A DNA stretch of 41,851 bases from Hyphochytrium catenoides (lineage: Eukaryota; Protista; Hyphochytriomycota): the NCBI GenBank assembly GCA_900088475.1, contig FLMG01003376.1:1-41851 (forward strand), in the 5' to 3' direction. Below the pieces are notes generated by a model. That model was not told the DNA's origin. It ran no database searches and saw nothing but the letters and a program-made list of their open reading frames with translations. Numbering within the stretch: position 1 is the stretch's first letter; each line of letters opens with the position of its first letter. The translations under genes and the position numbers were made by a program. Below are positions 4,476-36,835 of this stretch, piece after piece.

Positions 4476-7400
4476 CTATCGCCTGTACCGGTGCGGGGGA
4501 GGAGAGACTCTTCTTCTCATATCTCTTGGGTTAGAATATCTCTCTCTTGAGGAGGAAGGCCGACGGTGGTACCCTCCTCGCCCGCCTCCACTCTGTCTTC
4601 CAGTGGAAGCGGAGCGGCTGGGCGGGTAGTGATGATGTGAAGGAGGAGGAGGAGGAGCGTTGCGATGGCCTTTTCGACGTGGAGAGGAGCTGCCATATCT
4701 TCGAGGGGGAGGAGGCCTTTCGCCTTAGGAGAGGAGAGAGTGTTGGAGGACGGAGAGAGAGAGAGAGAGAGAGTCAAAGACACCGGCATATGAAATGCGA
4801 GGGAGAATTAGTCGATCCAAAAGACAAGAGAAAATCAAAAGACAGAGCTTCAGGAGCGGATGAACCACAAGGGTGAGCCATCTCATAAGAGTCAGAGCTT
4901 AAGAGAGTAATGCAGAAGAAGCTTTGTACCTCTGACGGGGCTCTTGTCTCTCTCTTCTCTCCTAAAGTTTCTCTCTCTGGGTTCCTCACTGTCATCGTAG
5001 GGGGAATCATCCCCAGCCCCATGAGTAGATATCACTTCCTCCACCGGCGGGCTATAGAGAGCAAGAAGAGATGGGAGAAATTAGTCATTAGAAAGAGCTT
5101 GTGGAGAGAGTAAGAGAGAGACACACAGAGAGAGAGTGCGACATGATATGTGGGACTGCCTTTGAAAAGGGAGATATGGACAAATAAGCTGAATGGCTTG
5201 CTTCTCCCTCTGTCTGTCTGTCTTTCTCGCTCTGTGTTTGCCGTAGCATGAGCAACTTACCTATCAATTCTCTGTTCTGACTCCTGGGGAGAAGCGCCGC
5301 GCTGCTCTTGTGCTGTTGGAAGCGAAGAAGGTTCGTCTTCTGGCTCTAACTTATTGATCTCTTCTCTCTCTGTTGCTCTTTCGTCGTCTCCTTCTAGCTC
5401 AACTCCTTCCATCTCATCGACCTCGAAGTCTACCTCGTTATCCTCTACATTGTCGGTTTCCATCCGTCCCGACTTTCTTCCTTGAACAGAAGAGGAAGAA
5501 GAGAGACGAGGCCGTCTCTCTGTTTGGTCTCTACTCTCTCTAGAGGGAGAAAGACGCGCCTTCTCTTTCACGTCTGGGTCTTGGTCGGGTTCAATACCGG
5601 TTTCTCTCTTTGTTATCCTATAGTCTTCTTCCCGATCTTGGCTTCTCCTAACCTCTGCCTCTGGCTCGTGAGGAAGAGGAGAGACGGGACTTTGCTCATC
5701 TTCTCTCTTCGGCAGCCGAGGAGGAGAGGGCAGGGATGGAGCTGAAGGCTCAGGTCCGTTCTCGCTTCGTCTTCTTTTGGCAGGATAGTGTGCTGGGCTT
5801 TGAGACCTGGAGCGGCCTCTTCGAGAAGGAGGGAGAGAACCAGCAGGGAGAGAATGTGAATGAGGAGGCGCTCGTGGGCGCTCTCTCGAACGTGAGCGCG
5901 GCTCCTCTCTCCTTCCAGGCTGGCCCATTTCTCTCTCTCTTCCCCTTCGAGCATCTTCTTCTCTCTCCCTCTCGTATCCTCGAGGTGCCCCCTGCCAGTA
6001 TTGCGGTGGAGGCGGAGATCGTCTCTCTCCTGCTATTCTTCTCTCTTGGCCTGCTCTCCGTCTATCCTCTCCTCTTGAGCCTCTGCCGAAAGGAGAGGGA
6101 GAAGGAGAAGACTCTCGTCCTCGGACCCTTCCTACGTGGCGCGCAGGGTCTCTCTCCCTCTCCTGATACCGAGGAGGAGGAAGATGGCTCCGGGGTGACG
6201 GTGGTCTGGCAGCAAGTGGAGGCTGTTCCCGTCTCTCCCAAGAGCGAGAGCGATGGTGTGGCACCCGGGGAGGATAATCTTCTCGTCCTCTTCTTCCTCT
6301 CTCCACGTCGTTGCGTCTCTCCTCTCCTCTTCTTGGCAGCTCTTCAATAACTCCAGGCCTAGTGCTGCCCCGATGACGATCCCGCGACCTTGACCGATAG
6401 CCTTGGACAGGCCGCGGGGAACGAGGAGCCACGCCATCTCTGTGAGGCTCTCTTCCTCTCCCTTGTCCTTCTCTAGTAATCGATCCTCTCCCGTCCCTTT
6501 GTTCCCTCCTACTCTGTGCGTTCAAGTTGTCGTTTGAAGGGAACGGCAAGGCTTCTGTTCCTCCTTTTCTAACCTCTTCTCTCCTTACGTGACCCCCTGG
6601 TCCTTCAATGATGGAGGCTGGTCGAGGTAACAAGCCCTTTCTGTCCGCGTCTAACACTTCCCGTTCTTTCTCCTCTGCTCGTCCTTGATCGCGTGGCTCT
6701 CCCAGCTCGTCCAACCCAGAAGCATGAGGGCCGGCCAGGGAGGAGTCTTCCCAATCATCTGACAGGAGAAGCCCCATAAGAGCGCGGACCAAAGAGAGGA
6801 TAAAAGGTCGTGGCTAGAATGAATGACCTCTAGCGCCGAAGAACAGGCTGACAAAGGGAAGGAGATAATTTTCCCTGGAGATCTAAAGCAGCACGGTGTT
6901 ACCTTCCGACTCACGCAGGGCAGGCATCTGCGGAACCTTGTCATAGCTTGAGTCTGGGGAACCCTTGCTTTCTTCATCTCTACGTGCCTCTCTTTCCTCT
7001 CCTTCAACTCTGTCTTCATGGTCTGTGCGCTCCTCACTCTGCGTGACCACCTCAGACACCATACTTTCCCTAGTGGCCAAAGGCGCAGCTGCAGAGGTTG
7101 CCAGAAGAGGATTTGCATCCTCTCTCGTCCGAGATAACTCGACCCGCAAAGGTACATTTTTGCCGACAACCAGCTTATCGAGGGCATGCACGGCCTCTGC
7201 AGCATCACAGAAAAAGAAGGGAAGAGAGAGAGAGGAAGTTAGCCAGCCATCGGGAAAGTGCAGGACAGAGTTATAAAAGAAGAAGGAGGGCGGCCAAAAA
7301 TCTTTGACCCTCTAAGTCGAGCTGGATAGAGCCGACGCTGTAGAGGGACCATATGAGGAGGAAGGAGAGTGGCAGTGCAGGAGGTAGGAAAGAATGAACG

Positions 7401-9026
7401 ACAGACAGGCTAGAAAAGGCTAGAGACAGCGACATTCTCTTTTTTACCTTCTGCTATCTGCTTACTCCGAAAGCCCAGAACCATAATCCGATCCTCAGGC
7501 GCCCAAAGCAGCTCTCTGTAGCTGTCGATCCTATGGTCATATTATTCAACGACAATCAGGAATTGGTCTAAAAGAGTGTGGGCCAAAGGCGCGGCAAGGA
7601 GCAATGAAGAAATCTTCTACGGTTGACCAGGACGGACGAGAACACAGCGGCAAGAGTGCTCTCTCCGATTGTTCACAGCCAAGATGACCAGTGAGACAAA
7701 GTGTTGCTAGCGAAGGAAAATGAAGAGGAAGAGCCGACGAAGAACATGACAAGGGTAACATAAGATGGGGAACACAAAGAGAGAGAAGGAAAGAGAGAGA
7801 AAGAGAGAGAGACCGCTAGACCGACAAAGGAAGAGACAGAGGAGAGATGAGAGTTAGGAGTGAAAGAGAAACATAAGATGTACCGCACCTTAAAGCTCTG
7901 GTTAGGACTTCCTTCCTTGTGGCCTCACTGGCCACCCGCCGGACCTCAACCTTACTGTCTGTTCCAACCTCCTCCTCGGGAAGAAGCTGCTCTCTGTTGC
8001 CCTCTCTTCTTTCCTGCTCTTCTCTCTCGGGCTCTACCTGATATATTCTCACCTCTTCCTCTTTTAAGGCATTCTTCTCTATTTCTAGAGTGGGAGCCTC
8101 TACCCTCCCCATCGACGAAGTGCCAGCCCGAGGAGAGGGCCGTGTTGCTCTCTGTGCCGAAAGAGGGAGGGACAGCTGACTTGGAAGGGGCTTATCCCCA
8201 ATAAGGCCCGATGCTTCTTTCTTCTTTTCTCCTTTCTCTCCCTTAGGCCCATTATCGTAGCATACATAGAGCTTCTGCCCGTTGAGAACAACTCCTTTAG
8301 TATCCTTGACAGCTGCTGCGGCTTCAACGACCTTGTGAAAGGTGATAGAAAGCCTCCCCGGCTCCTGTTGATCTCCATTGCTTTCCAGCTTCTCGGTAAC
8401 AGGAATGAGCGCGGAGTCTTCTATAGTCCCATACTTGGCCATCTGACGTACAACCTCCTGGAAGACCCAAAAGAAAAAGAAGTTTAGACCTTGGTCTCTG
8501 ACTTGCTCTGAGCATGTCCGGCCTCTCACGATGTTCTTGTTCTCTTTGGCGTCCTTCTTTTGGAATCCTCTCTCTCTCTTTAATCTTCTTATGAACCTTG
8601 CGGATTCTTACCTCTTGGTCTTCCTTTCGACATGGCTCTACCAGGACTTTTTTGCACGAGGGTCCGAAAGAGAAGTTCACATTCACTTTCCTGTTCAAAA
8701 GAGTGAAGTCCTTGAGCTCAGACACTGCACGCCTGGCCTCCTCCTTTGTCCGATAAGAGACAAAAGCATAACAACTGGTGCGCCGTTGTCCTTTCCCTAA
8801 TAAATACATGTGCAGCGAGAGGAGATTCAGAACGAGGCACAGGGAAAGAACTGACCAGAGGAGAACCGTAAAGCTAGAGAGCTATACCATGGACCATAAA
8901 ATTGAAGCAGAAAGGGACAGAACGTTGTCAGAGCCGCGCGCTAGGTGTAGGAGGTAGCCGCAGCTTGAGAAACATTTGGAGCTGAGTAAAGTTTATTCAG
9001 GAGAAGGCGAGCAAAGGCCCTGGAGT

Positions 9027-9059
<33 letters not shown>

Positions 9060-10903
9060 AGAGAGAGAGAGAGAGCGTGCGCGCGAGAGAGAGAGGTGCG
9101 AAGGGCGTAAAGGGACAGTACAAGCTAAGCTGGGACAATTCAAGGACGACAGTCCGCAGGCAGCAGGATACCTTTGCCTCCTATCTGCTTCTTCAGCACT
9201 TGGACATCCTTCGCCGTGACATGACCATATTTGTTTAGAGTTGGGAGAAGATCTTTGGCGGTAGCGTCTCCAGGAAGAAGGCTAAGGAAGACAAAGCGCG
9301 TGGGTCTGGACGGCTCTTCAAGCTCTTTTTTACCGTTATCTGATGCCTCCTCTTTGACCTTCTTCTCAGGTCCTTTGGTCGTCTTTTCTCCGCCTGTTTC
9401 TCCCCTGGATAATGCCTGGTTTCCTTCAGGCCCAGGTCCCGGGCCCGGTAGCTTCGGGCGCTGGCTGGCATCTTCTTGTTTCTCGTTTTTGGCAGGAGGA
9501 CTCGGAAGGGGCTGCCTTTGCTGGGTACTCTTAGGTTCTGCTGGCTTCTGCGCCGTTGCTGGGGGAGGCTTGGCTGGGGGAGTGGCCACCGTGGTGAGGA
9601 GCGCCCGAAGAGAGCGCTCAATCGCCCTTGACTTCTCTTCTTTTAAGTGTGACGCCGCTATTGCTTTTACCTGAGCAGCCACAGAGCAAACACAGTCAGT
9701 CACATGAGGGGACTAATGAGCGAGAGAGAGCATCGAGCCGTCGAGACAATGAATGGAATGGCTTCGCTGACGACAAGTCCTTAGAAGTAGCCTGATCGAG
9801 CACAGAAGACGTATCCGCAGGAAAGGAGCGATACCAAGAAGCGTGAGTGCAGGGAGCGAGAGAGAGAGATAGCCTGATCGAGCACAGAAGACGTATCCGC
9901 AGGAAAGGAGAGATACCAAGAAGCGTGAGTGCAGGGAGCGAGAGAGAGAGAGAAAAAGAAGTGTAGGGGGAAGGAAGATGGTCAGGATGGAGAAACAGGT
10001 AAACGCCTGATACCTTGTCCCTGACATCATTCCCTGCTGCTGGTTCTCTGATCAGTGCAGTGATGGCTCGAATGGAATGTACGCGGATTGCTTGGTCATG
10101 CTCAGGACTAGCAAACTTCAGCAGGGCATCCACACTCTCAGAGATGTGCTCCGGGAACAAGGATATATGCTAATGTAGGAGAACGATCGCTTAGCGTGAG
10201 ACAGCGGACAAGAGAAAGAGCATAATGAGGGAGAACGTGGAAGTGTAGCAGTCCTGGAGGTCGGAGTAAAAAGGTGTATCTATAGAAGAGAAAGGGAGAG
10301 AGACTAAGAGAGGGCAAGAAAGAGACAGAGCGCATTGAAGCTAAGATAATAGCTTGGTCTCGGTGTTCTATCAGACAGATGCGAATAAAATAGTCTAGAG
10401 GAAGGTAGGTAGAGAGATGAGTGTCTTCTGAAGAGGACAAAACATTGCTGCTGGGCACTGAAGAAAGGCTGTAAGACCTTCGTAAGGATCTGTGAGGCTA
10501 CTCCGATGGTCCGGACATTGCTCTTGGCATCTATGTAGGGAAAGTAGTTAGAAAACTACGGAGCCTGACACCTTTTGTGACACTCCTGAGAAATAAGCAA
10601 GAACTGCTGAACGACATACGGAGAAGGAGCGAGAGAGAGAAATGCGGCGAGAGATGGAGCGAGAGAGGAGATAATGGAGAAAAGACTGATCCCTTCACTC
10701 GCCTTACCGACTGCATTGAGTGTGGATAATATTCTGCTAAATGCCTTGGCATGTTCTTGCCCGATCGTGCCTCCTTTCGGTCTTGATAGTGCTGTGTCTA
10801 TGGAATATAGCACGGTGATGGGATCTGCTAGATACCAAGCGGTGCGATGCATGCAGCCAATCCGAGAGGAGCAGTTCTTAGAGACGAGGAGGGAGTAACC
10901 CAT
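4476..10903 (-). CDS. ~1276-aa protein: API5-like helical N-terminus, three RRM-like domains, long RS/RE/P-rich tail (putative RNA-processing factor)
   Basis: Phase-consistent exons 10903-10900 (or in-frame read-through), 10827-10708, 10530-10478, 10169-10014, 9670-9172, 8796-8612, 8457-7889, 7530-7448, 7196-6903, 6758-5261, 5051-4930, 4723-4476. RRM1 has FVFLSLLP...CYAFVSYRTKEEARRAVSELKDFTLLNRKVNVNFS. The tail has RSRSRDR, RSRSWER, RGRSRSQSP and ends RRRVSPPPHRYRR*. Confidence 0.8.
9788..9951. repeat. Two near-identical 82-bp tandem copies inside an intron
   Basis: tagcctgatcgagcacagaagacgtatccgcaggaaaggag(c/a)gataccaagaagcgtgagtgcagggagcgagagagagaga starts at 9788 and again at 9870, with one substitution. 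Confidence 0.95.
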
Positions 10904-12994: not shown

Positions 12995-15900
12995 TCAGAT
13001 TTCCGCCTCCATGCTATCCAACGCCAATCGCTTTTGCCAGCGCAGCAGCACAGGCTTCGAGAGAGTCTTTAAAGTCCTTAAGCTCTGCTCAAAGCCAATC
13101 TCCCATGTGCTAATACCGTTGATCGTGAGGAGAATGTCTCCAGGGGAGACCAGAGCCAGGTCAGGATAGTTGCCTTTCCCTGTCAACCTGCTAACGACGG
13201 GCAAATGGCTGACATCGTCCTCGTAAAGAGAGAGCCCCAGCGGTCCTTGCAACCAGTTTGTGTTAAACTGCCCTTCCTGCATTGAGTTTGATCGCAAGAG
13301 AACCTCACTGTTAGGGGCTGAGGACTGGCCCTCCGTCGGCCTTGGAGCAAGTCCTCCTGCTGGGTCATAGGGCCGCCGGAACACTAGAGTTACTGGCTTT
13401 ACGGCCGAGCCTAATAAGTTAATGATCTCATCAAAGTTCTTCCCTTCTACGGCGCTGCCTCCAGCCCTGATAAGGAGATCTCCCTTGTTCACTTTACTGA
13501 TCTCTGGGCAGACAGACCGGCCAGTGAGCCTTCGCACGCAAGGAAGACCCGTAAGCCCGTCTTTTTTCATTGTGATACCCAGTGGCCCTTCCGTCCAGTG
13601 GAAGGAATATTCATCGCCAGGAAAGGACGGTGACGAGAAAGACGGAGTAGGAGAGGAAGAAGGAAAGGAAGAATGTATAGGGGGCGAGGGAACAGGTTGA
13701 GGCGGCATTGGAGCCGATTGCCGTGTGATGCTGATGGTTTGACTCCCGTCTCTGTGCGCTGGAGAGTTCTGCTGCTCGCCTCCATAGCCTCTGCTTCCTC
13801 TGCTAGGAGGTCGCTCAGATGTGTACGTAGAGGCCAAAGAAGATGCAGGAGGCGGTGAAGGAGAAGAAGCCACGGGTCCACCAAAGGCGGAAGCATAACT
13901 AGATGGTGGAGCTTGCTGCCAATCACTCTGTGAAGCGTAATGGGTTGACGTTGACTGATAGAAAGGAGAGGTTGAAGACGAACCCGTGAAATTTGGCAAT
14001 GGCTGCTGTTCGACCACCGAAGAGTAGGAGGGCTTCTCAACTGCAGAGGAGTAAGGAGGAGAGAGAGGCTCATAGAACGAAGACGGGGCTGCAGGAGGTG
14101 CATTCTGATAAGAAGACGGCGGGGTCTGTCCCTCTTTGAAAAAAGAGGATGAGCCCTTTCCTGTGGTCTCGAGGGCCGAGGCTGACGAGTAATCTCCGCT
14201 GCTTCCACCTCGAGACAACGCCGCAGTGCCCTGCATGCCTCCTCGCGAAGTCCGTCCTCCGCTGTGTCCTCTAGATAAAGAGGGCGCGGAAGAGGGTCCT
14301 GCATAGGCAGGAGAGTTCAGTGGTGATGCCTCACGCGTCTGGCGACTTTCAGGAGCTGAAGCATCATACAAGCTAGCTGCAATAGGGCCAGACAGAGATG
14401 ATGACAGATGCGTGGAGCCGGAAGAAGCTGGAAAAGCAGACGTCAAGGACGATGAGAGAGACCCCATGTCATTGGCCACAAGAGATTGATTTGAAGGAGA
14501 TTGCGAGAGGGGTGGCGCAAGCGTCGTCGCAATCTGGGAAGGACGGAGCTTCTGAAATCTCAAGATTATCGGCTTCTCCAGCTTAGCTAGAGATTCCATC
14601 ATCTCTGTGTAGCTCATACCAAAGGCAGACGTAGAGTTGAAAGAGAGAAGAAGGTCTCCCACAGCCACTTTCTCTCTCACTTCTCGTGAGCCCTTTCCTG
14701 TCAATCTTTTAACGGAGGCGGTGTGCCTCTGTTCATCTCTCTGGAAGGCAATGCCCAGCGGTCCACCGGCCCAGACCACGGTATACTCTTCTGCCCCGCT
14801 GTCAGAGGATGAAGATGCAGACCGCGAAGAGAGAAGAGAAGCACCATGGGATGTAGAGGTATATCCGCCCCCTGCTCCTGTTGCTTGAGCTGTGCCATTG
14901 AGCATATAGTCGCTGCCACCTCTTGAGTCATAGAAAGAGTCTTCTTTTCCTCCGCCACTTCTCTCTCTTTCAAAGCTATTCCTTTTGTGAGTCTGAGAGG
15001 GAGGGATGGGAGGGCGAGCGTGGGGAGAGACTTCTGGAGTGAGAAATGCTCCCTTTTTCGACGGAGAAGAGGGGATGCTGGACGCCGTTCCGTTCTCCGC
15101 CTCTCCATTGTTTCTGCTTGAGGCAGAAATAGCCCTAGGCACTGGAGAGAGATCCTCCCTAGGGGTTGAAGCTAGAGGAGAGGGACTGAGAGAGAGCTTT
15201 TCTTGCGACTGCTGTCTTCCATTTAAAGGAATTGGAGGAGGAATCTCAAGCGTCTTCAGGTTCTCCGCTGTCAGAAGGCTATCTGTCTTCTTTCTCGCCC
15301 CCTCCTGCCCTGAAGCAGCCCCAGCAGTTGCTGTCGCGGCAGCAGAGGACTGAGCACCTGCATCTCTTTCTCTTCTCCGCTCTCCGCCACTTCTGGACTT
15401 CTTCCCTCCGACTAATCGACTGAACTGCATGACGACCGGCCTCTGGTCAGAAGTGAGGATGTCGCAGACCGCCTTATAACCTATTTGAGAGCACACTTTG
15501 TTGTTGACTAACGTCAGGATGTCGCCCTGAGCTGCATGTTCCAGACCCGAACTTGTCCCTTTGCCTGTCAGGCGCTTGATCATGGGGCGAGAGTCCGCTG
15601 TCTTAGTAAGTACAATCCCTAGAGGCCCATCTTGCCACAGGACCGTGTACATTCTGACCTCTCCCTCTCCTGAGGAGCGAGAGGGCGATGAGCGAGAACG
15701 TGAGGAAGCAGAGTGCACGCGAGAGAAGCGAAGGATGACAGGCTTGGGCAGATCTCGGAGTAGCTTCATGCTGGCATCGAAGCCATTCTGCGCCGTAGAC
15801 TTGTCGTTAAGCGCGATTAGCTCGTCGTTGACCTTAACCACAGCGCGAATCGTCTCGCTGGCACGCTCTGTAACGACAAGAATGGCCGGAATGTTATTCT

Positions 15901-17041
15901 TGCTGCGGACGAAAGAGATACCGAGGTCTCCTTCAGTCCAGGTGACTGTGTATTCCTTGGGCTCAGGAGGAGGAGAGAGAGAAGGAGCCGATAAAGGAGC
16001 AGCCTGAAGTCCAGCGAGCTGCATATTCTGCACTTGCAGCTGCAGTGTCTGCTCTAATTGGGCTAAACGCGACTGCAAAAGTTCTAACTGCTGTGCCTCA
16101 ACACTCGTTCCTCCTCCTCGCCCGCCGCCTTCGTCGTCATCTTCACGGGGTCTTCGTGGCTTCTTAGGCTTCTCTTTCTTTGGTTTTCCTTTTGGTTTGC
16201 TCTTGGCCTTAGCCGCTTTACTAGCAGCAGCGGCAGCCTGCGCGGCTTGTGCGGCCTTTCGAGCCCTGACGGGTATGGATTCATCATCAAAGTCTTCGTC
16301 CGAATCTTCGTCGGAGTCGTCGGAATCATAGTCTGAAGAGCCTGTTTCATCATCCCATGCTGGGGAGAACAGAACACGAAGAGAGAGAGAGAGAGATGCG
16401 GTCAAAAAGAGGGGGCCAACACCAAGGATGGAGCTCCATTTCGAGCAACAACAGATGAGACACAGAGAGGAAGCGAACAGCGAGGTTCTCAGAGAGCTAA
16501 GATCAAAGCTCGGAGGTGCATTAGCAGTAAGAAAGAGTAATGACAACTGCAAAGCGCCAACGAGAGGAAAAGCTGTGCACTGATGAAGAAAGAAGAGCTC
16601 TGGAGCTTCAAAAACTTACCATTTCCATTGATCTTCGCGGTAAAGCAAGCTCTTCGATGATGGACAGCGTTATTCCTGAGGCAAGCCTATGGGTCGAAGA
16701 AGAGAGAGTTATCCAAGCTGTAGAAGTGGAAAGGAGAGAGAAGCCTCCACACAGAGCCTCAGACATCAATAACAGAAAAGAGTGACAAAGAGCACATACA
16801 TAGAGAGATTGGAAGAGAGAAAGCCGCCCAGAGAGGACGACAGAGCGCCAAGCGATCTACTCACCATCGTGCAGTAGTACACTGATTTGCAGTTGTTACA
16901 AGGAAAGTTAGCTCCCAGCTCCCCGCAGTTAGCACAAGCCTCAGACATCGAGGAGCGGCGACTAAGGTGTGAAGACGAGACACTCTCAGTGTCATCATCC
17001 TTCATCTGCCGCAAGGCAGCGAACAAATCGTGGTTTGCCAT
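12995..17041 (-). CDS. ~1202-aa MYND zinc finger + five PDZ-like domains, scaffold protein
   Basis: Exons 17041-16865, 16686-16620, 16359-12995, phases consistent. Spliced finger: CANCGELGANFPCNNCKSVYYCTM|ACLRNNAVHHRRAC. Five repeats of Y/F-x-x-x-W-x-x-G-[DP]-LG-[IL]...K/R-P-V/I-x-L-x-F/W separated by Ser/Pro-rich linkers. Confidence 0.88.
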
Positions 17042-19203: not shown

Positions 19204-22203
19204 ATGATCTCACAGTTCTACGTCCTATCTAATAGAGGAGATACCATTATCTCCAGGGACTATCGGGGTGACTGTCCCCGGAGGTCGGGAGAAATATTCT
19301 TCCGTAAGGTTAGTCGAAGTGTCCCATCGTTTCGGAGTGTCTCATCCTCTACGTTTCTCTTATTCTTCGTCCTCTAGACCTATGCAACCTTCAGTCTTAC
19401 TTTGCCGTCTACTTATACAAGGCAGAGACACCCTAATATACTTTCTTGGGTTGCAGGTGAAGTTCTGGGAGAAGGGCGATGCGCCGCCGTGCTTCATTGT
19501 CGATGGCGTGAACTACCTCTTCGTTAAGAAAAATGCCCTATACTTTGTGGCAACCACAAGGTACAGCTCCTTATCCTTCCACCTTCATGGATTTCTAGTG
19601 CGAGAGAGATCTACATCAGCCATGAGTATGTTCCTTGATTTCTTCTATGTATACCCTTCAACCTTCGTCCCCGTTGCTGTCTAGCCATAGCCACTTGATA
19701 ATCCTGTTCTTTGACAGATTTAATGTATCGCCGTCCTTCATTCTGGAGCTATTGACAAGGTTATGCAGAGTTTTCAAGGTGTGAAGCCAGGGATATGAAG
19801 CTTGTGCTCCTACCTATTCCCGCGTCTCACCCTCATCACTAACCCTTACTCTGCCCGCGGTCTCGCTTCTTCTTCTTTCTCTATGGCTCTCATAGTCAAT
19901 CACTATCTACGTCTTCTTTTTTGCTCCACCTTCTCTGACTCTGACCTCTCCCCCTATCGGTCCTCGCTCTTTAGGACTATTGCGGAGTGCTTAGTGAGGA
20001 GACTATCCGGAAGAACTTCATTCTAGTCTACGAGCTTTTAGATGAGTGTGTGGATTACGGCTACCCGCAGGACACCAGCACAGAGGGCCTTAAGGCACAC
20101 GTGCACAACGAGCCAATCCTCGTAGGAGCGGCCGCACAGGCCAAGACAGCAAACAAAGGAAAGCTTCTCAACCGTTCCACGAATATTAAGGCAGCGGCAG
20201 CAGTTAGGAAGCCGGTGGCGACGGGCCAGCAACGGAAGGCAGATGAGAACGAGCTCTTCTGCGATATTCTGGAGCGCCTTAATGTCGTCTTCAGTCCTTC
20301 AGGACAGGTTAGCAAGCAGTTTGAGGGAATGGACTCCTACGCCATGGTCTTATCGGTCTTTTTCTTCTTCTCACGTTCTTCCTCTTGAGCCTTCGAGATC
20401 GTATGGCACTGACGCGCGTCCTCATCTTTTCATTTGAACTGTCTCCTCGTCTGGAAGATGCTGAACTCCTCCATTGAGGGGCGCATACAAATGAAGAGCT
20501 ACTTAGCTGGGAACCCTGAGCTTCGGCTAGCGCTTAATGAGGATTTGGTTATTGGGCGCGGTATGGGAGGCTCAGTTATCCTGGATGACTGCAACTTCCA
20601 CGAATGTGTACAGTTGGACGAGTTCGAGAGAGACCGAGTCCTCATCTTCCAGGTAACATCTCTCTCTGGGTCGATACCTAGCTTCTTCCTACAGTTTCCT
20701 CTTTCTACTCATGTCTCTCCGATTACTCCTGTATTCAGATGATTCTCTTTTTACGTCTTGCTCGTGTGCCAACGTTCCTCTACTGCCTTGGCCGATGCTT
20801 GTTGTGGGAATCTACTAACCCTGTGATGCTCTCTCTCTCTCTTTCTTCTCTCTCTGTCTCTTTCACCTTCCCTTTCAGCCTCCAGACGGAGAGTTCACTG
20901 TGATAAACTATAGGATCACAGGAGAGTTCCGGGCGCCTTTCCGAATTTTCCCTTTCTTAGAGGAGCTCTCTCCCACGAAAGTGGAGGTACGACTATTGAG
21001 CACTTCCTCCCTTCCTCACCTTCATCTCCTTTCTCCTGCAATTAAAAGCAGAGCTCTCTCCTTCTTTCTCCTTCTCGTTTATTCCCTAGTGCTACCCTCT
21101 TCTCTTATTCCACTCTCCTCTATTTTGCCGTTGCCTAAACTGCCTTAGTCTAATGTCTGCGCTCTGGCTCTTGCTCACTCGCTTCGTCATTGCCATCGCA
21201 GCTCGTAGTGAAGATCCGCGCTGACATGCCCGAGGCGAACTATGGTGCAAACGTTATTATCAGATTCCCTGTCCCTCAGAAGACCGTCAGCGTTAGCTGT
21301 GATATTGGGAAAAATGCCGCTGGACAGATTGCAGAGTACAGAGAGAATGAGCATCAGGTGTGTATGTGTATGGAAGGGTCCATCTCCTCTCTCTCTCCCT
21401 TCCTCTCTCTCCTTCTCTCTCACGCTCTCGCCCTCTGACTCACACACACAGGCACACTTACACCCTTGTCGTTTCTAAAGAACCAACTGTTTACTCTAAT
21501 CCATAGAGGCTCTTTCAGCAAGCGCGCTCTCACTCGATCCCTAGTTCCACCTTGGCTGACTTTTCTTCTGTCTCTTTCGGACTCCTCTGCCCTCCCATCA
21601 GGTCCGATGGGCAATCAAGCGCTTCGCTGGTGCTTCAGAGATGACTCTGCGCGCTAAGATTACACTTTCTGAGCCTTCTCCCATGTGGAGAAAGGAAATT
21701 GGACCGGTTTCCATGAACTTCGAGGTCCCTATGTACAACGTATCGAATCTACAGGTGAGGGCGAGCGGACAAGGATGCTGACTAAAGCGGGAAGAGAGGC
21801 GAGGGAGAGAGAGAGAGGTGGCATTTCTCCTTTGGAAGCATTAGACCAAGAGAGAAAATCTTGGATGTAGAAGCTTCATGACGTAAAGGACGGCGAATGG
21901 TTTCAGGAAGACTCTTATTCTTAAAGAGATATTAGAGACTGACAGCGGAGGAATAGAGGAGGATGGCGGCGCAGGGAAAGAGCGCGGATAATTGGGGAGG
22001 AGGAAAGAGAGAAAGAGATGAAGAAGAGTGTCCCATTGCTTCTGAACAGAGAGTTCATAAAAGAGAGAGAGTTGTTTTCTGACAGCATTCTTTCCCAGGT
22101 TCGCTATCTGCGCATCCCTGAGCACGCTCGACATCCGAGCTACAAGTACAAGCGTTGGGTGCGATACGTTACTCAGTCTTCCTCATACATTTGCAGGCTC
22201 TAG
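19204..22203 (+). CDS. AP4M1: Adaptor protein complex medium chain, AP-4 mu subunit (439 aa)
   Basis: Exons 19204-19308, 19457-19560, 19718-19778, 19975-20307, 20458-20652, 20879-20986, 21202-21357, 21602-21754, 22099-22203 (1320 nt). Motifs: MISQFYVLSNRGDTIISRDYRGD, DYCGVLSEETIRKNFILVYELLDECVDYGYPQ, LDDCNFHECV, PPDGEF, and the end RWVRYVTQSSSYICRL*, typical of mu4. Confidence 0.95.
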
Positions 22204-22703: not shown

Positions 22704-25459
22704 TTAGATTTCGACGATCTCTGACTCTTCTTCAACGTCTTCCGACTCGCTAAAGCTGTCTTCCGCCTCAAAGTTTGGCTTTGAAGGCTCATGGATGAGC
22801 CTTCTCCCAGACCGTCCAACTCTCTTTCCCTCTCCTCTTTTCCTCAGTTCTTCCACTCGAGTAGGCTTCGGGCTTTCTGCTTCTGGGCCAGTTCTATGCT
22901 GACCCAAGGTAAAGGAGCCAGAGGATGATGCGTAGTCTCTCTCTACGATGTCGGACAATCTACCGCTCTCAGAGAATTCTCTTTCCGTCCTGTCTCTATC
23001 TCCCGCTCTGGCTGGGCCGTCGATATAGGGAGACGGCGCCTTGGGCTCTTCATAACGCCGAATAGAAGACTCTCTGACGCTGTAGAAGGACTCAGTGGAC
23101 TCGAGAGGGTGTAGAGCGGGTCTTCCTCTCTCTCCCCGGATCTCCACTTCCCGCTCCCCTTGCTCACTTAAGTATCCGGCGGAAGGAGGAGAGGCTCTTC
23201 GGGTTGTGATGGGGCGAAGGATGAGAGAAGGGTCAAACGCTGGCTCTTCTTCCTCTCTCTCCCAATGAAGGGACGGAGCTGCAGTGTAAAAGGACGTAGT
23301 GTCTGACACTATGCTGCTGTCATGCGGGGAGGGGAAGGAAGGCAGACTGGTGCGACCAGTAAAGTCTGAGCAAGAGAAGAGAGGGATCAGCCATTGTCCA
23401 AGAATGGAAAAAGCGGACGTAGGAAAAGGACGCAAACGAGAGAAAGAGGCCCCCACAAGGCGGAGAAAGGAGAAAAAAAAGAAAGAAAGAGAGGAAAGGG
23501 GCAGGGACTTAATATTTACAGAGAATAAGGGGCAATGGTGAGCCTATCTAACGAGACAAACAGAAGCGGGAGAACGGAAAGAGATTAAACGTGGGAGAGA
23601 AGGGATAAGAAGCGAGGGAGAGGAGAGAGATAGGAAGAGGCAGAGAGAGAGGCAGCGGAAAGAGGAAGGGGAAAGAGAAAGGATCTTACCTGTCGGTGTT
23701 CTTCCTGGGAAGCTCCCGCTCTCAGAGCGCCTGCTCCCAGCGTACGAGTCCACTGGCTCCGTGCGTCTAAAGCCAGCTCCTTCTGAGACCCTAGAGCCTC
23801 CATAGGACTCGCGTCCATGTGAGAGGGAGGCACCACCCGTGAGCCGTCCGCTGTCACTTGCCCTTGAAGTCCCATCCAAAGAACCTCTCTCCCCAAGCCT
23901 TTCGCTACCTCTCTCCTCTCCAGGCTCGCTCTTGACGATGCGCTAACAAGCAAGACAGAATTAGCTAGCTGCGATGCAGTTGTAGGATTCTTACGTCTTG
24001 GCCCGCGACCCGTCTTCTGTGCGCCATCCACATCCCCGAGATAGACAGCATGGCATCTCTTTCCTTCTTGATCTACTTTACCTCTGGATCAAGTATTTCC
24101 ATAGCTTTCTCTCCAGAGTCTCCGTCGCTCGCTTTGCCTCTCTCTGTGACTGTGTCTCTCCCTCCTGGTGTCCCTCTCTCTCTCTTCCTTTGCCTGCCTG
24201 CTTTGGCTCCGCTATTACTCTCTCTCTCGTCGCTTGTGGCCATGCCCCATTGCCAGGTTTTCCTCGCACAGCCTTCACGGCTCAGCTCTTCGGCACTGAC
24301 CTCGTAGCGTTGTCTCAATCTACTTCCCCAGTCCTTGGCATCCTGGAAGCTCCGCCCACCAGTAGAGTCTCCTCTGTCTCTCCCTACGGACCCTTCCCGA
24401 GTAATCTGGCTGCCTATATCTACGGCCGCGTTCTGCGCAGAGACATGATAAGTTTAGAGACTAATAACAAACCCAAGGGATGGATAATGCAATGCAGACA
24501 GCGCCAGACCACGGAAAATAAGACAAGCAGAGAGAGACACACACAGGTACACCCACACAGCGGGAGAGAGAGAAAGAGGGAAATGCTCTTCAGGCTGACG
24601 AATGCGACATGCACTGGGGCAATGGCACGACCCAGAGAATAAGGAAAGAAAGGAAAGTACAGCGGGAGTTGGGCAAACTCTGTCCAGAGAAGAGAAGATA
24701 ACAAGAGAGAGACATCACCTTCGCATCTCTTCGAAGCTGGCTCTGAAGCGCCAGCGTGTGATACTTGGGACCCTCCGACATACCGAGCTGGGCCCGCAAC
24801 AGCTTCAAGTGTGAATGAATAAAGCAGAGCAAAGGAGACAATGTCCAGAAAGAGAGAAACAGCGAGAGAGACAGTGTGTGTGAGAGGGAAATAATAAAGA
24901 GGTAGACCGAGGGGAACAGAGAGCCGGAGAAGCAAGAGGAGACAAGTCCTGGTCATAAACGGCTAGAGAAGTTTGATCACTGCGGATGCCAGAGGCAACA
25001 CAGATTGGAGACCGTTGCGGTACTGACCAGCAGCAGGAAAGAAGACAGAGGAGCCTCATGAGCACAACAGCTGAGGAAAGCTGGAAAAGAGAGAAGGGAG
25101 AAAACGAGAGAAGATTGGAACAAGGAAGAGAAATGAGTGAGATGGTAAAATAAGCGAGAGAGAGAGAGAAAGAAGTAGAACCACACATTAATATCCTCTC
25201 GCGTCCTATCCATGTCTTCCTTCTGTTCTTCTTCTATGGCTTGCAGCTGAACTGTCTCGTCGGAGAGAGGGACAAACTCTTGCCCTCTATCTATTGGAGG
25301 GAGGCCGATAATACTGTGCAACTCATTGATCAACGTCCGTTTCTGAACCTCGAGCTGCTCAGATGATTCCGTAGCTACGAGTGGCGAAGGGNNNNNNNNN
25401 NNNNNNNNNNNNNNNNNNNNNNNNNNNNNNNNNNNNNNNGAAAGAGAGAGAGAGAGAGG

Positions 25460-35365: not shown

Positions 35366-36835
35366 CTAAGATAAAAGAGTGAAGACAACGAAGCTCAATA
35401 GTGATACTAGCGACAACGTGCTCACAAATCTATGGGAACTAGGGCTACTGCTCTGATCTGTGCCGCCGCTCTGTCCCTTGTCATTCACTCGTGCTACGTT
35501 AGAGCCCGAGGACCCCACATAGAAGTGGAAAGAGGAGTCTGCAGGCGGCATAGGAGTGACCGGAGGCCCATAGAGCTTCTGGAAGTCTTTGATATACTGG
35601 CGCGTAGGATATTTTGGTGGGTCGCATCCAATGTTAATTTGTTTGACTGGCTGATAGATCCTGACATAGTCCACAGAGAAGACTGCCGGTAGCGTGGTCT
35701 TTTCAGGTCCTCCAGCCCAAGAGGTGGCAGATCCCATGGCAAAGTTGATGATCATGGTAAGCGGCTCCTCCGGAACGAGACGCTGCTGAGTGCATGCCAG
35801 CGTGGCGTTTGTAGGGTCGCAGTATTTGCCCAAACTCTCTGCCGTCATGCCAATGATCAGCTTGTCATTGAAGAACATTTTGATCAGTCCCTTGTCGCCC
35901 GGGACCCACTCGACAACGTAGACATTCCACGCATAAATATCCTCAGGCGTGTAGTCATAAGATGCCGTCACAGCGTCAGTAAAGTAAGTCTTGACGTCAG
36001 TGTTGCCATAATACTGAGTGTTTCTTGCGCCAGGGCCCATGGTAATACCCCGATACCAGGATCCAGGCCCGTTAGGCACCTTCGATACCGGAGTTGTGAC
36101 CGTCTCAGGGCGGTAGTAGAAAGGAATGGAAGGCGCAACTTGGTAAGACATCACTACGAATTCTGGCTTTAGCGTCCAGCCCTCGAGAAGGTCAATCTCT
36201 GGAGCTCCCCTACCCTGGTTGGGGTTTAGTCCGTGCCCAGGGTTAGCGTTGCAAGCGTTAATCTTTTGCTGTTTCTTCGATATTTCATCGCAGGAATTAT
36301 AGCTGAATGGCCACACATTCTTCGTGCTCTCTTCAAATTGTGCTCGCCCTAAGTTTCCGATGGTCCAGAGCGCAGGCCAGACACCTTCACTCTTGGGCAT
36401 GTTAGCCCGGATGCTCATCACACCGCCAGTGAAGCAAAACTTGTTCCATGACTGGATGTGCGCACCGGTGTAAAGCTTACCGCCTTGTGCCTTCTCTGTC
36501 ATCGTCATGCGCAGCGCCCCACCGTAAGTCGTTACCGCGTCTGGAGACATGTACTCCTGCGCCTCATTTGTGACATCTGGCTGGTCAAGTGCCGTCCACA
36601 TCTTATCCTTCCCGTTTTCAAAGCGTCTGTTGTCCTTATTGAACTCATCAGAAGCGACCAGGACATACTCTTGATTGAATGAGGTCTTGTACATGTGAGC
36701 CCCCGCTGGTGTGTCAGGGTCAATCCAAAACTTTAGGTTCTGGTACGCCGCAGGGTTTAGTTTCGAAAGCTGCGCGCTTGTGCTTGCGGCGCCTGCCAGA
36801 GCTAGCAGGCAGGAGACAGCTAGCTGGGCCTTCAT
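35366..36835 (-). CDS. Beta-glucan synthesis-associated KRE6/SKN1-like GH16 protein (489 aa), signal peptide and hydrophobic C-terminus
   Basis: Single-exon ORF. Likely start MKAQLAVSCLLALAGAA. Motifs: WIDPDTP, LVASDEFN, QSWNKFCFTGG, GVWPALWTIGNLGRA, catalytic GRGAPEIDLLEG, VPEEP, VDYVRIYQ, GCDPPKYPT. Ser-rich spacer followed by a hydrophobic tail. Confidence 0.93.
   Translation of the reverse strand: MKAQLAVSCLLALAGAASTSAQLSKLNPAAYQNLKFWIDPDTPAGAHMYKTSFNQEYVLVASDEFNKDNRRFENGKDKMWTALDQPDVTNEAQEYMSPDAVTTYGGALRMTMTEKAQGGKLYTGAHIQSWNKFCFTGGVMSIRANMPKSEGVWPALWTIGNLGRAQFEESTKNVWPFSYNSCDEISKKQQKINACNANPGHGLNPNQGRGAPEIDLLEGWTLKPEFVVMSYQVAPSIPFYYRPETVTTPVSKVPNGPGSWYRGITMGPGARNTQYYGNTDVKTYFTDAVTASYDYTPEDIYAWNVYVVEWVPGDKGLIKMFFNDKLIIGMTAESLGKYCDPTNATLACTQQRLVPEEPLTMIINFAMGSATSWAGGPEKTTLPAVFSVDYVRIYQPVKQINIGCDPPKYPTRQYIKDFQKLYGPPVTPMPPADSSFHFYVGSSGSNVARVNDKGQSGGTDQSSSPSSHRFVSTLSLVSLLSFVVFTLLS

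Follow-up and report, generated by a model that had tools for sequence, protein, structure and literature searches.

Apoptosis inhibitor 5 (API5) is a scaffold of ~500 aa that is helical throughout, its HEAT helices α1-α11 being followed by the ARM-like helices α12-α19 (PMC7293033). The segments of API5 that contact FGF2 have been mapped to residues 142-148, 183-191 and 219-237 (PMC7293033). The protein is nuclear and has been tied to mRNA export through UAP56, for which the binding site on API5 is unmapped (PMC7293033, PMC10813780). A helical N-terminal module placed ahead of RNA-binding domains is found in another group, that of the CID-RRM-RS proteins. A third point of reference is given by the canonical SR proteins, which under the 2010 nomenclature have one or more N-terminal RRMs followed by an RS domain that is 50 aa or longer and has an RS content above 40%. 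Here we describe a locus of the protist Hyphochytrium catenoides that most likely joins a short helical head, RRMs and an Arg-rich tail in one gene, and we compare it with these systems.

The window, that is the whole stretch of 41,851 nucleotides analysed, holds on its minus strand a reading frame that can be followed through 12 exons from an ATG at 10903 to a TAG at 4476 (Table 1). This model comprises 3,981 nt, or 1,327 codons for a protein of ~1,326 aa, and contains no internal stop. All 11 junctions are phase-compatible, ten of them being GT-AG and the remaining one GC-AG. The initial annotation had quoted three spliced N-terminal peptides, and these are indeed encoded as written, letter for letter, in the three small exons 1, 2 and 3, with GT-AG borders, matching phases and CT-rich introns in between. 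Two start codons are available in exon 1, the ATG at 10903, which has a G at both -3 and +4, and a second in-frame ATG at 10852. Exon 2 is required for the frame, since it bridges exon 1 (phase 1) to exon 3 (phase 0), and with 17 aa it lies below the usable query length of every search tool. Exon 3 joins exon 4 in phase 0, position 9670 being the next acceptor followed by an open frame. Beyond exon 4 the model was built by splice-site and phase bookkeeping down to the TAG at 4476, the end that had been named in the initial annotation. Exons 7 to 9 are its least certain portion. Exon 10 ends at a consensus AG/gtaagt donor that overlaps the ORF stop at 5257.

Table 1. Features of the 12-exon gene model, in order of transcription (positions are those of the window; a slash marks an exon-intron border).
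Feature	Position	Strand	Description
Exon 1	10708-10903	-	First helical hairpin; donor G/gtaagg, outgoing phase 1
Exon 2	10478-10530	-	53 nt; ~17 aa of helix; acceptor ag, donor gtctta
Exon 3	10014-10169	-	52 aa, one HEAT-type helix-turn-helix hairpin; acceptor ag, donor gtatca; phase 0 on both sides
Intron 3	9671-10013	-	343 nt, 70% pyrimidine; holds an 82-bp tandem duplication
Exon 4	9172-9670	-	166 aa: ~28-aa helix (by eye, no fold), P/K/E-rich linker of ~90 aa, N-terminal half of RRM1
Exon 5	8612-8796	-	C-terminal half of RRM1 (RNP1-like CYAFVSY) and first strand of RRM2
Exon 6	7889-8457	-	Remainder of RRM2 (divergent) and 116-aa E/R-rich linker; donor AG/gtgcgg, phase 2
Exons 7-9	7530-7448, 7321-7244, 7196-6903	-	Compact third RRM-like region and acidic linker; by eye and phase bookkeeping
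Exon 10	5261-6758	-	~498 aa, Arg/Ser/Glu/Asp/Pro-rich RS-like domain
Exons 11-12	5051-4930, 4723-4476	-	In phase; acidic stretch, then R/P/S/G-rich tail; stop TAG 4478-4476

Several other features were observed in the window. The upstream neighbour, at 12995-16552 on the minus strand, is a long ORF that is rich in Ser and Pro and exceeds 1,000 aa. In it, a PDZ-like unit of ~90 aa is repeated about six times with a common motif, YTV.W..GPLGI, and the last copy matches Pfam PDZ at 3.7e-8. At 35369-36835 on the minus strand, a single exon encodes a protein with a signal peptide that belongs to the SKN1/KRE6/Sbg1 family of beta-glucan synthesis (Pfam 2.1e-77). On the plus strand, an exon at 19987-20388 resembles by eye the N-terminal part of a mu subunit of clathrin adaptors (..FILVYELLDE..GYPQ..), and Pfam returned no match for it at 1e-3. 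Runs of N near 25400, 26700 and 40900, which appear as X in the ORF translations, are assembly gaps within the window.

The initial annotation had also proposed that the helical exons are fused in frame to the RRMs and to an Arg/Ser-rich tail, and the frame logic upholds this. Exons 2, 3, 4 and 5 contain no Met codon at all, and the first Met after exon 1 lies inside RRM2. Exons 4 and 5 encode RRM1 but offer no Met, so that RRM1 would be translatable solely from exon 1, which argues for one gene. We regard this RRM1 without a start codon of its own as the main argument for a single transcript. Exons 1 to 12 would on this basis most likely be spliced together as one gene. One could also imagine two transcription units, with a small helical protein made from exons 1 to 3 and ending at a read-through stop at 9696, and an RRM/RS gene starting downstream. 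The frame of exon 3 indeed stays open through intron 3, with a stop 26 nt before exon 4 (ORF 9696-10160), and a search for RNA sequencing runs, which might have linked exons 1-3 to the RRM exons, returned none. However, a bona fide RRM would then stand on exons 4 and 5 with no Met to start it, the next one being inside RRM2, and the open frame of exon 4 starts exactly at an AG acceptor placed behind a pyrimidine tract. The composition of intron 3 points in the same direction. Pyrimidines make up 65-71% of introns 1-4 and 6, where CT/TC dinucleotides number 31-36 per 100 nt, against 39-52% pyrimidine and 11-17 such dinucleotides per 100 nt in the exons. Intron 3, lying between the helical exons and those of the RRMs, is like the other introns and unlike the 5' flank, and it does not look like an intergenic spacer. 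The 82-bp unit that it carries at 9788-9951 (2.0 copies in tandem, 98% identical) appears to have been duplicated very recently, within sequence that does not code. We consider two transcription units unlikely.

One would also wonder whether exons 1 to 3 are coding at all, as they could be 5'-UTR exons or open frames that arose by chance, in which case the helical peptides would not be made. A crude codon-usage score (log-odds, trained on two neighbouring ORFs) cannot tell exons 1-3 from other frames, and the searches returned no relatives that could reveal purifying selection. But the same score fails equally on exon 5, a certain RRM exon, and is powerless here. Moreover, three consecutive exons that are free of stops, matched in phase and translated into amphipathic hairpins speak for coding sequence, and RRM1 would be left with no other source of a start codon. 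Non-coding exons 1-3 therefore appear very unlikely to us, and a single coding transcript remains our preferred reading. Additional HEAT exons hidden upstream of exon 1 or in introns 1-3 were considered and rejected, the ORFs there being short and not helix-like and the composition intronic.

Intron 5 (8458-8611) differs from the other introns in being purine-rich, with 38% pyrimidine. It is open in the frame of exon 5, where it would encode a K/E/R-rich stretch, and retention of its 154 nt would shift the frame of RRM2. By analogy with SR-protein genes, it may be a regulated retained 'poison' intron.

RRM1 is, by its sequence, a classical RRM. Exon 5 matches Pfam RRM_1 (PF00076) above the gathering score, with an E-value of 2.1e-5 and 24.8 bits for a cut-off of 20.7, over profile positions 36-69. 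The last 53 aa of exon 4 cover profile positions 1-32 at 13.1 bits. A phmmer search of the PDB with exon 5 returned the RRM-containing chloroplast ribosomal protein cS22, Sxl and PABP at 1.5e-5 to 5e-4. RRM2, on exons 5 and 6, is divergent, with a sub-threshold match to RRM_1 (profile 39-69, 12.7 bits, E 0.12) and a weak match to PABP in the PDB. The third RRM-like region, on exons 7 to 9, was recognised by eye and has no Pfam match. Its frame needs an intron of 47 nt at 7197-7243 with GC-AG borders (gctaac...tgcag), while the other introns modelled from exon 1 to exon 7 measure 154-375 nt. This 47-nt intron may be genuine and of minimal size, or it may reflect a mistake in the assembly.

The tail that follows is Arg/Ser/Glu/Asp/Pro-rich and extends over ~600 aa in all. 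Its main part, exon 10, is composed of 19% R, 14% E, 12% P and 10% S, and contains 24 RS/SR, 35 RE/ER and 11 RD/DR dipeptides. RS/SR dipeptides cover at most 13 of 50 residues (26%) in any 50-aa window, below the content that defines the canonical SR (SRSF) proteins. The tail is thus RS-like and of mixed charge, but it is not a canonical RS domain. The "SR tail" of the initial annotation holds in so far as the region is Arg/Ser-rich and RS-like.

The helical head was analysed exon by exon, so that the power of the tests is that of pieces of ~50 residues. AlphaFold2 predicted helices 11-23 and 29-47 for exon 1 alone (10852-10709, pLDDT 72) and helices 6-18 and 22-40 for exon 3 alone (pLDDT 74.6). 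In these single-exon models, exons 1 and 3 show the ~40-aa helix-turn-helix hairpins in tandem that are expected of HEAT repeats. The head, of up to ~165 aa, would consist of three to four HEAT-type hairpins.

The initial annotation had likened this head to the N-terminus of API5 and had suggested a Pfam search. Run by exon, that search gave a match of exon 3 to API5 (PF05918) with an E-value of 0.11 and 11.8 bits, residues 3-42 aligning with positions 51-89 of a profile of 536. API5 is the sole Pfam family that matches exon 3 at E<=10, and its placement is colinear, as ~60 residues of the model precede exon 3. However, the gathering cut-off of PF05918 is 27.4 bits, and no exon tested singly attains this score. 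Exon 1 and the helix of exon 4 gave no API5 match, the latter matching no family at all, and when all PDB sequences were searched by phmmer with exons 1 and 3, none of the chains matched at E<=10 was of API5. By eye, the resemblance to API5 seems to run on colinearly through the end of exon 3 and the helix of exon 4, which we use as a lead only. What stands of the API5-like head is a short all-helical module with one colinear match to API5 alone; the family assignment itself stays below the threshold.

Whether this signal reflects common descent can be argued both ways. That the head descends from the N-terminus of API5 is a tentative reading, which we find quite possible but short of probable. 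The same gene could instead carry a generic or other helical-repeat module unrelated to API5, belonging to another HEAT/ARM family or being CID-like as in SCAF4/8 and Nrd1. The match of exon 3 would then reflect the common HEAT consensus, whose second helix is of the Asp/Glu-x-x-Ile-Arg-x-x-Ala-Ile type. The low API5 score, reached on one exon only, fits such an unrelated module, as does the lack of an API5 chain in the PDB search. Protein language-model features point the same way, for they place exon 3 nearest to HEAT clusters (PP2A-A-like, EF3, TOR, CAND1) at 0.95-0.96 and list no API5, with a recognition value of 2128 that is under the reliability mark of 2300. The order of a head of ~140-165 aa, RRM and RS/RE tail also mirrors that of the CID-RRM-RS proteins. 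On the other hand, no generic HEAT, ARM or CTD_bind family of Pfam matched any exon at E<=10, a result of little power with exon-sized pieces, whereas API5 did. A match colinear near the N-terminus would in addition arise by chance in about 1 in 25 cases, taken alone. A head unrelated to API5 is in our opinion a serious possibility, though not one that we would call probable. Foldseek against the PDB and a shape search of the Atlas with the 52-aa hairpin of exon 3 were uninformative, as expected for a single hairpin. A Pfam match of exon 1 to Urb2 was set aside as spurious. An identity of the head as a CID or PWI domain was rejected, as there is no profile signal and the hallmark motifs of the CID are absent by eye.

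Searches for relatives found none. A phmmer search with the RRM2 exon against 1.84 billion representative proteins returned only two hits, at E ~4e-4 to 9e-4, and both are junk tandem-repeat proteins. These sequences (P0001 and P0002) are translations of tandem repeats with the unit ..SITHDKTVITLEAVKDTDSP.. and show many spurious Pfam matches. E-values of ~1e-4 in a library of 1.84 billion proteins can thus stem from a repeat artefact. Metagenome scans with exons 3 and 4 found no relatives, nor did word searches with exon 6 and the region of exon 3, in which a length filter shuts out full-length kin. This absence is weak evidence of novelty, exon-sized queries being short in reach. Among the papers searched, none describes an API5-RRM architecture. 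Altogether, we consider the protein to be lineage-restricted and SR-related, a variant of the SR-related RRM proteins with an unusual HEAT-type head.

We propose, as a reading that we hold to be fairly probable, that the 12 exons form one minus-strand gene whose product, an SR-related protein of ~1,326 aa, binds RNA in the nucleus. It would consist of a ~165-aa helical-repeat head that a P/K-rich linker joins to two RRMs, after which come a third RRM-like region and the ~600-aa tail. In this protein the RRMs would hold pre-mRNA, and the Arg-rich tail could engage the network formed by SR-type proteins and the kinases acting on them. The HEAT-type head may offer a docking surface for a protein partner. 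The whole protein would then serve, while bound to RNA, as an adaptor for splicing or mRNP packaging.

The initial annotation had seen in the fusion Rosetta-stone evidence for a splicing/export adaptor. This argument is weak, because the head lacks the API5 segments known to bind partners. As none of the mapped partner-binding elements is kept, the fusion cannot yet serve as such evidence for a particular API5 interaction. It is conceivable but rather doubtful that a true relic of the API5 N-terminus survives as this head, in covalent fusion with RRMs and an RS-like tail. If it were true, the fusion would be natural evidence that the N-terminal HEAT repeats of API5 originally served to act on mRNPs during splicing or export. 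It would also mark the segment kept in the head as a docking surface for partners, one not yet mapped in the human protein. API5 is a scaffold of relevance to cancer that has only recently been linked to mRNA export through UAP56. If its first HEAT repeats were naturally fused to RRMs, this would hint directly, in a testable way, at which part of the protein works on mRNPs. If the API5 link fails, what is left is a lineage-restricted SR-related protein, unusual for its helical docking head, whose interest is local, for the annotation of a poorly sampled protist, and hardly goes beyond that.

By its weak sequence signal, the closest family would be API5 (API5/AAC-11; PF05918; PDB 3U0R). The protein shares with it an all-helical HEAT-type start at the N-terminus and the weak alignment of exon 3 to profile positions 51-89. 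Of the API5 features that were looked for, colinear placement was found, whereas the profile score, the scaffold, the partner elements and the similarity in the PDB were not. API5 has neither RRM nor RS tail, and the protein described here has both. Where API5 is a two-part helical scaffold of ~500 aa, the helices here end ~28 aa into exon 4 and give way to the P/K-rich linker and RRM1. The part that is kept corresponds at most to API5 residues 1-130, and the entire ARM-like half is missing. The acidic segments that contact FGF2 (142-237), the heptad leucine repeat and the NLS region of API5 have no counterpart here (PMC7293033, PMC10813780).

A parallel can be drawn with the SR and SR-related proteins (the SRSF family, U1-70K and the RE/RD proteins of the RBM25 type), which likewise combine one or more RRMs with an Arg-rich tail of alternating charge containing RS, RE and RD dipeptides. 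Canonical SR proteins, however, start with an RRM and exceed 40% RS content, whereas here a helical head precedes the RRMs and the content reaches at most 26% per 50 aa. By the order of its parts, the closest functional analogy would be the CID-RRM-RS group (SCAF4/8, Nrd1). In human SCAF4/SCAF8, yeast Nrd1 and Seb1 of S. pombe, a helical N-terminal docking domain of ~140 aa, the RRM(s) and an Arg-rich RS/RE region follow one another in the same order as here. In contrast to these proteins, exons 1, 3 and 4 gave no CTD_bind/CID signal at E<=10, a comparison of little power with exon-sized pieces, and exon 3 resembles a HEAT hairpin. The protein described here differs as well in the number of its RRMs, two to three, and in a tail that is much longer. 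The analogy suggests nevertheless that it may be an adaptor of the same kind, coupling a protein partner to nascent RNA.
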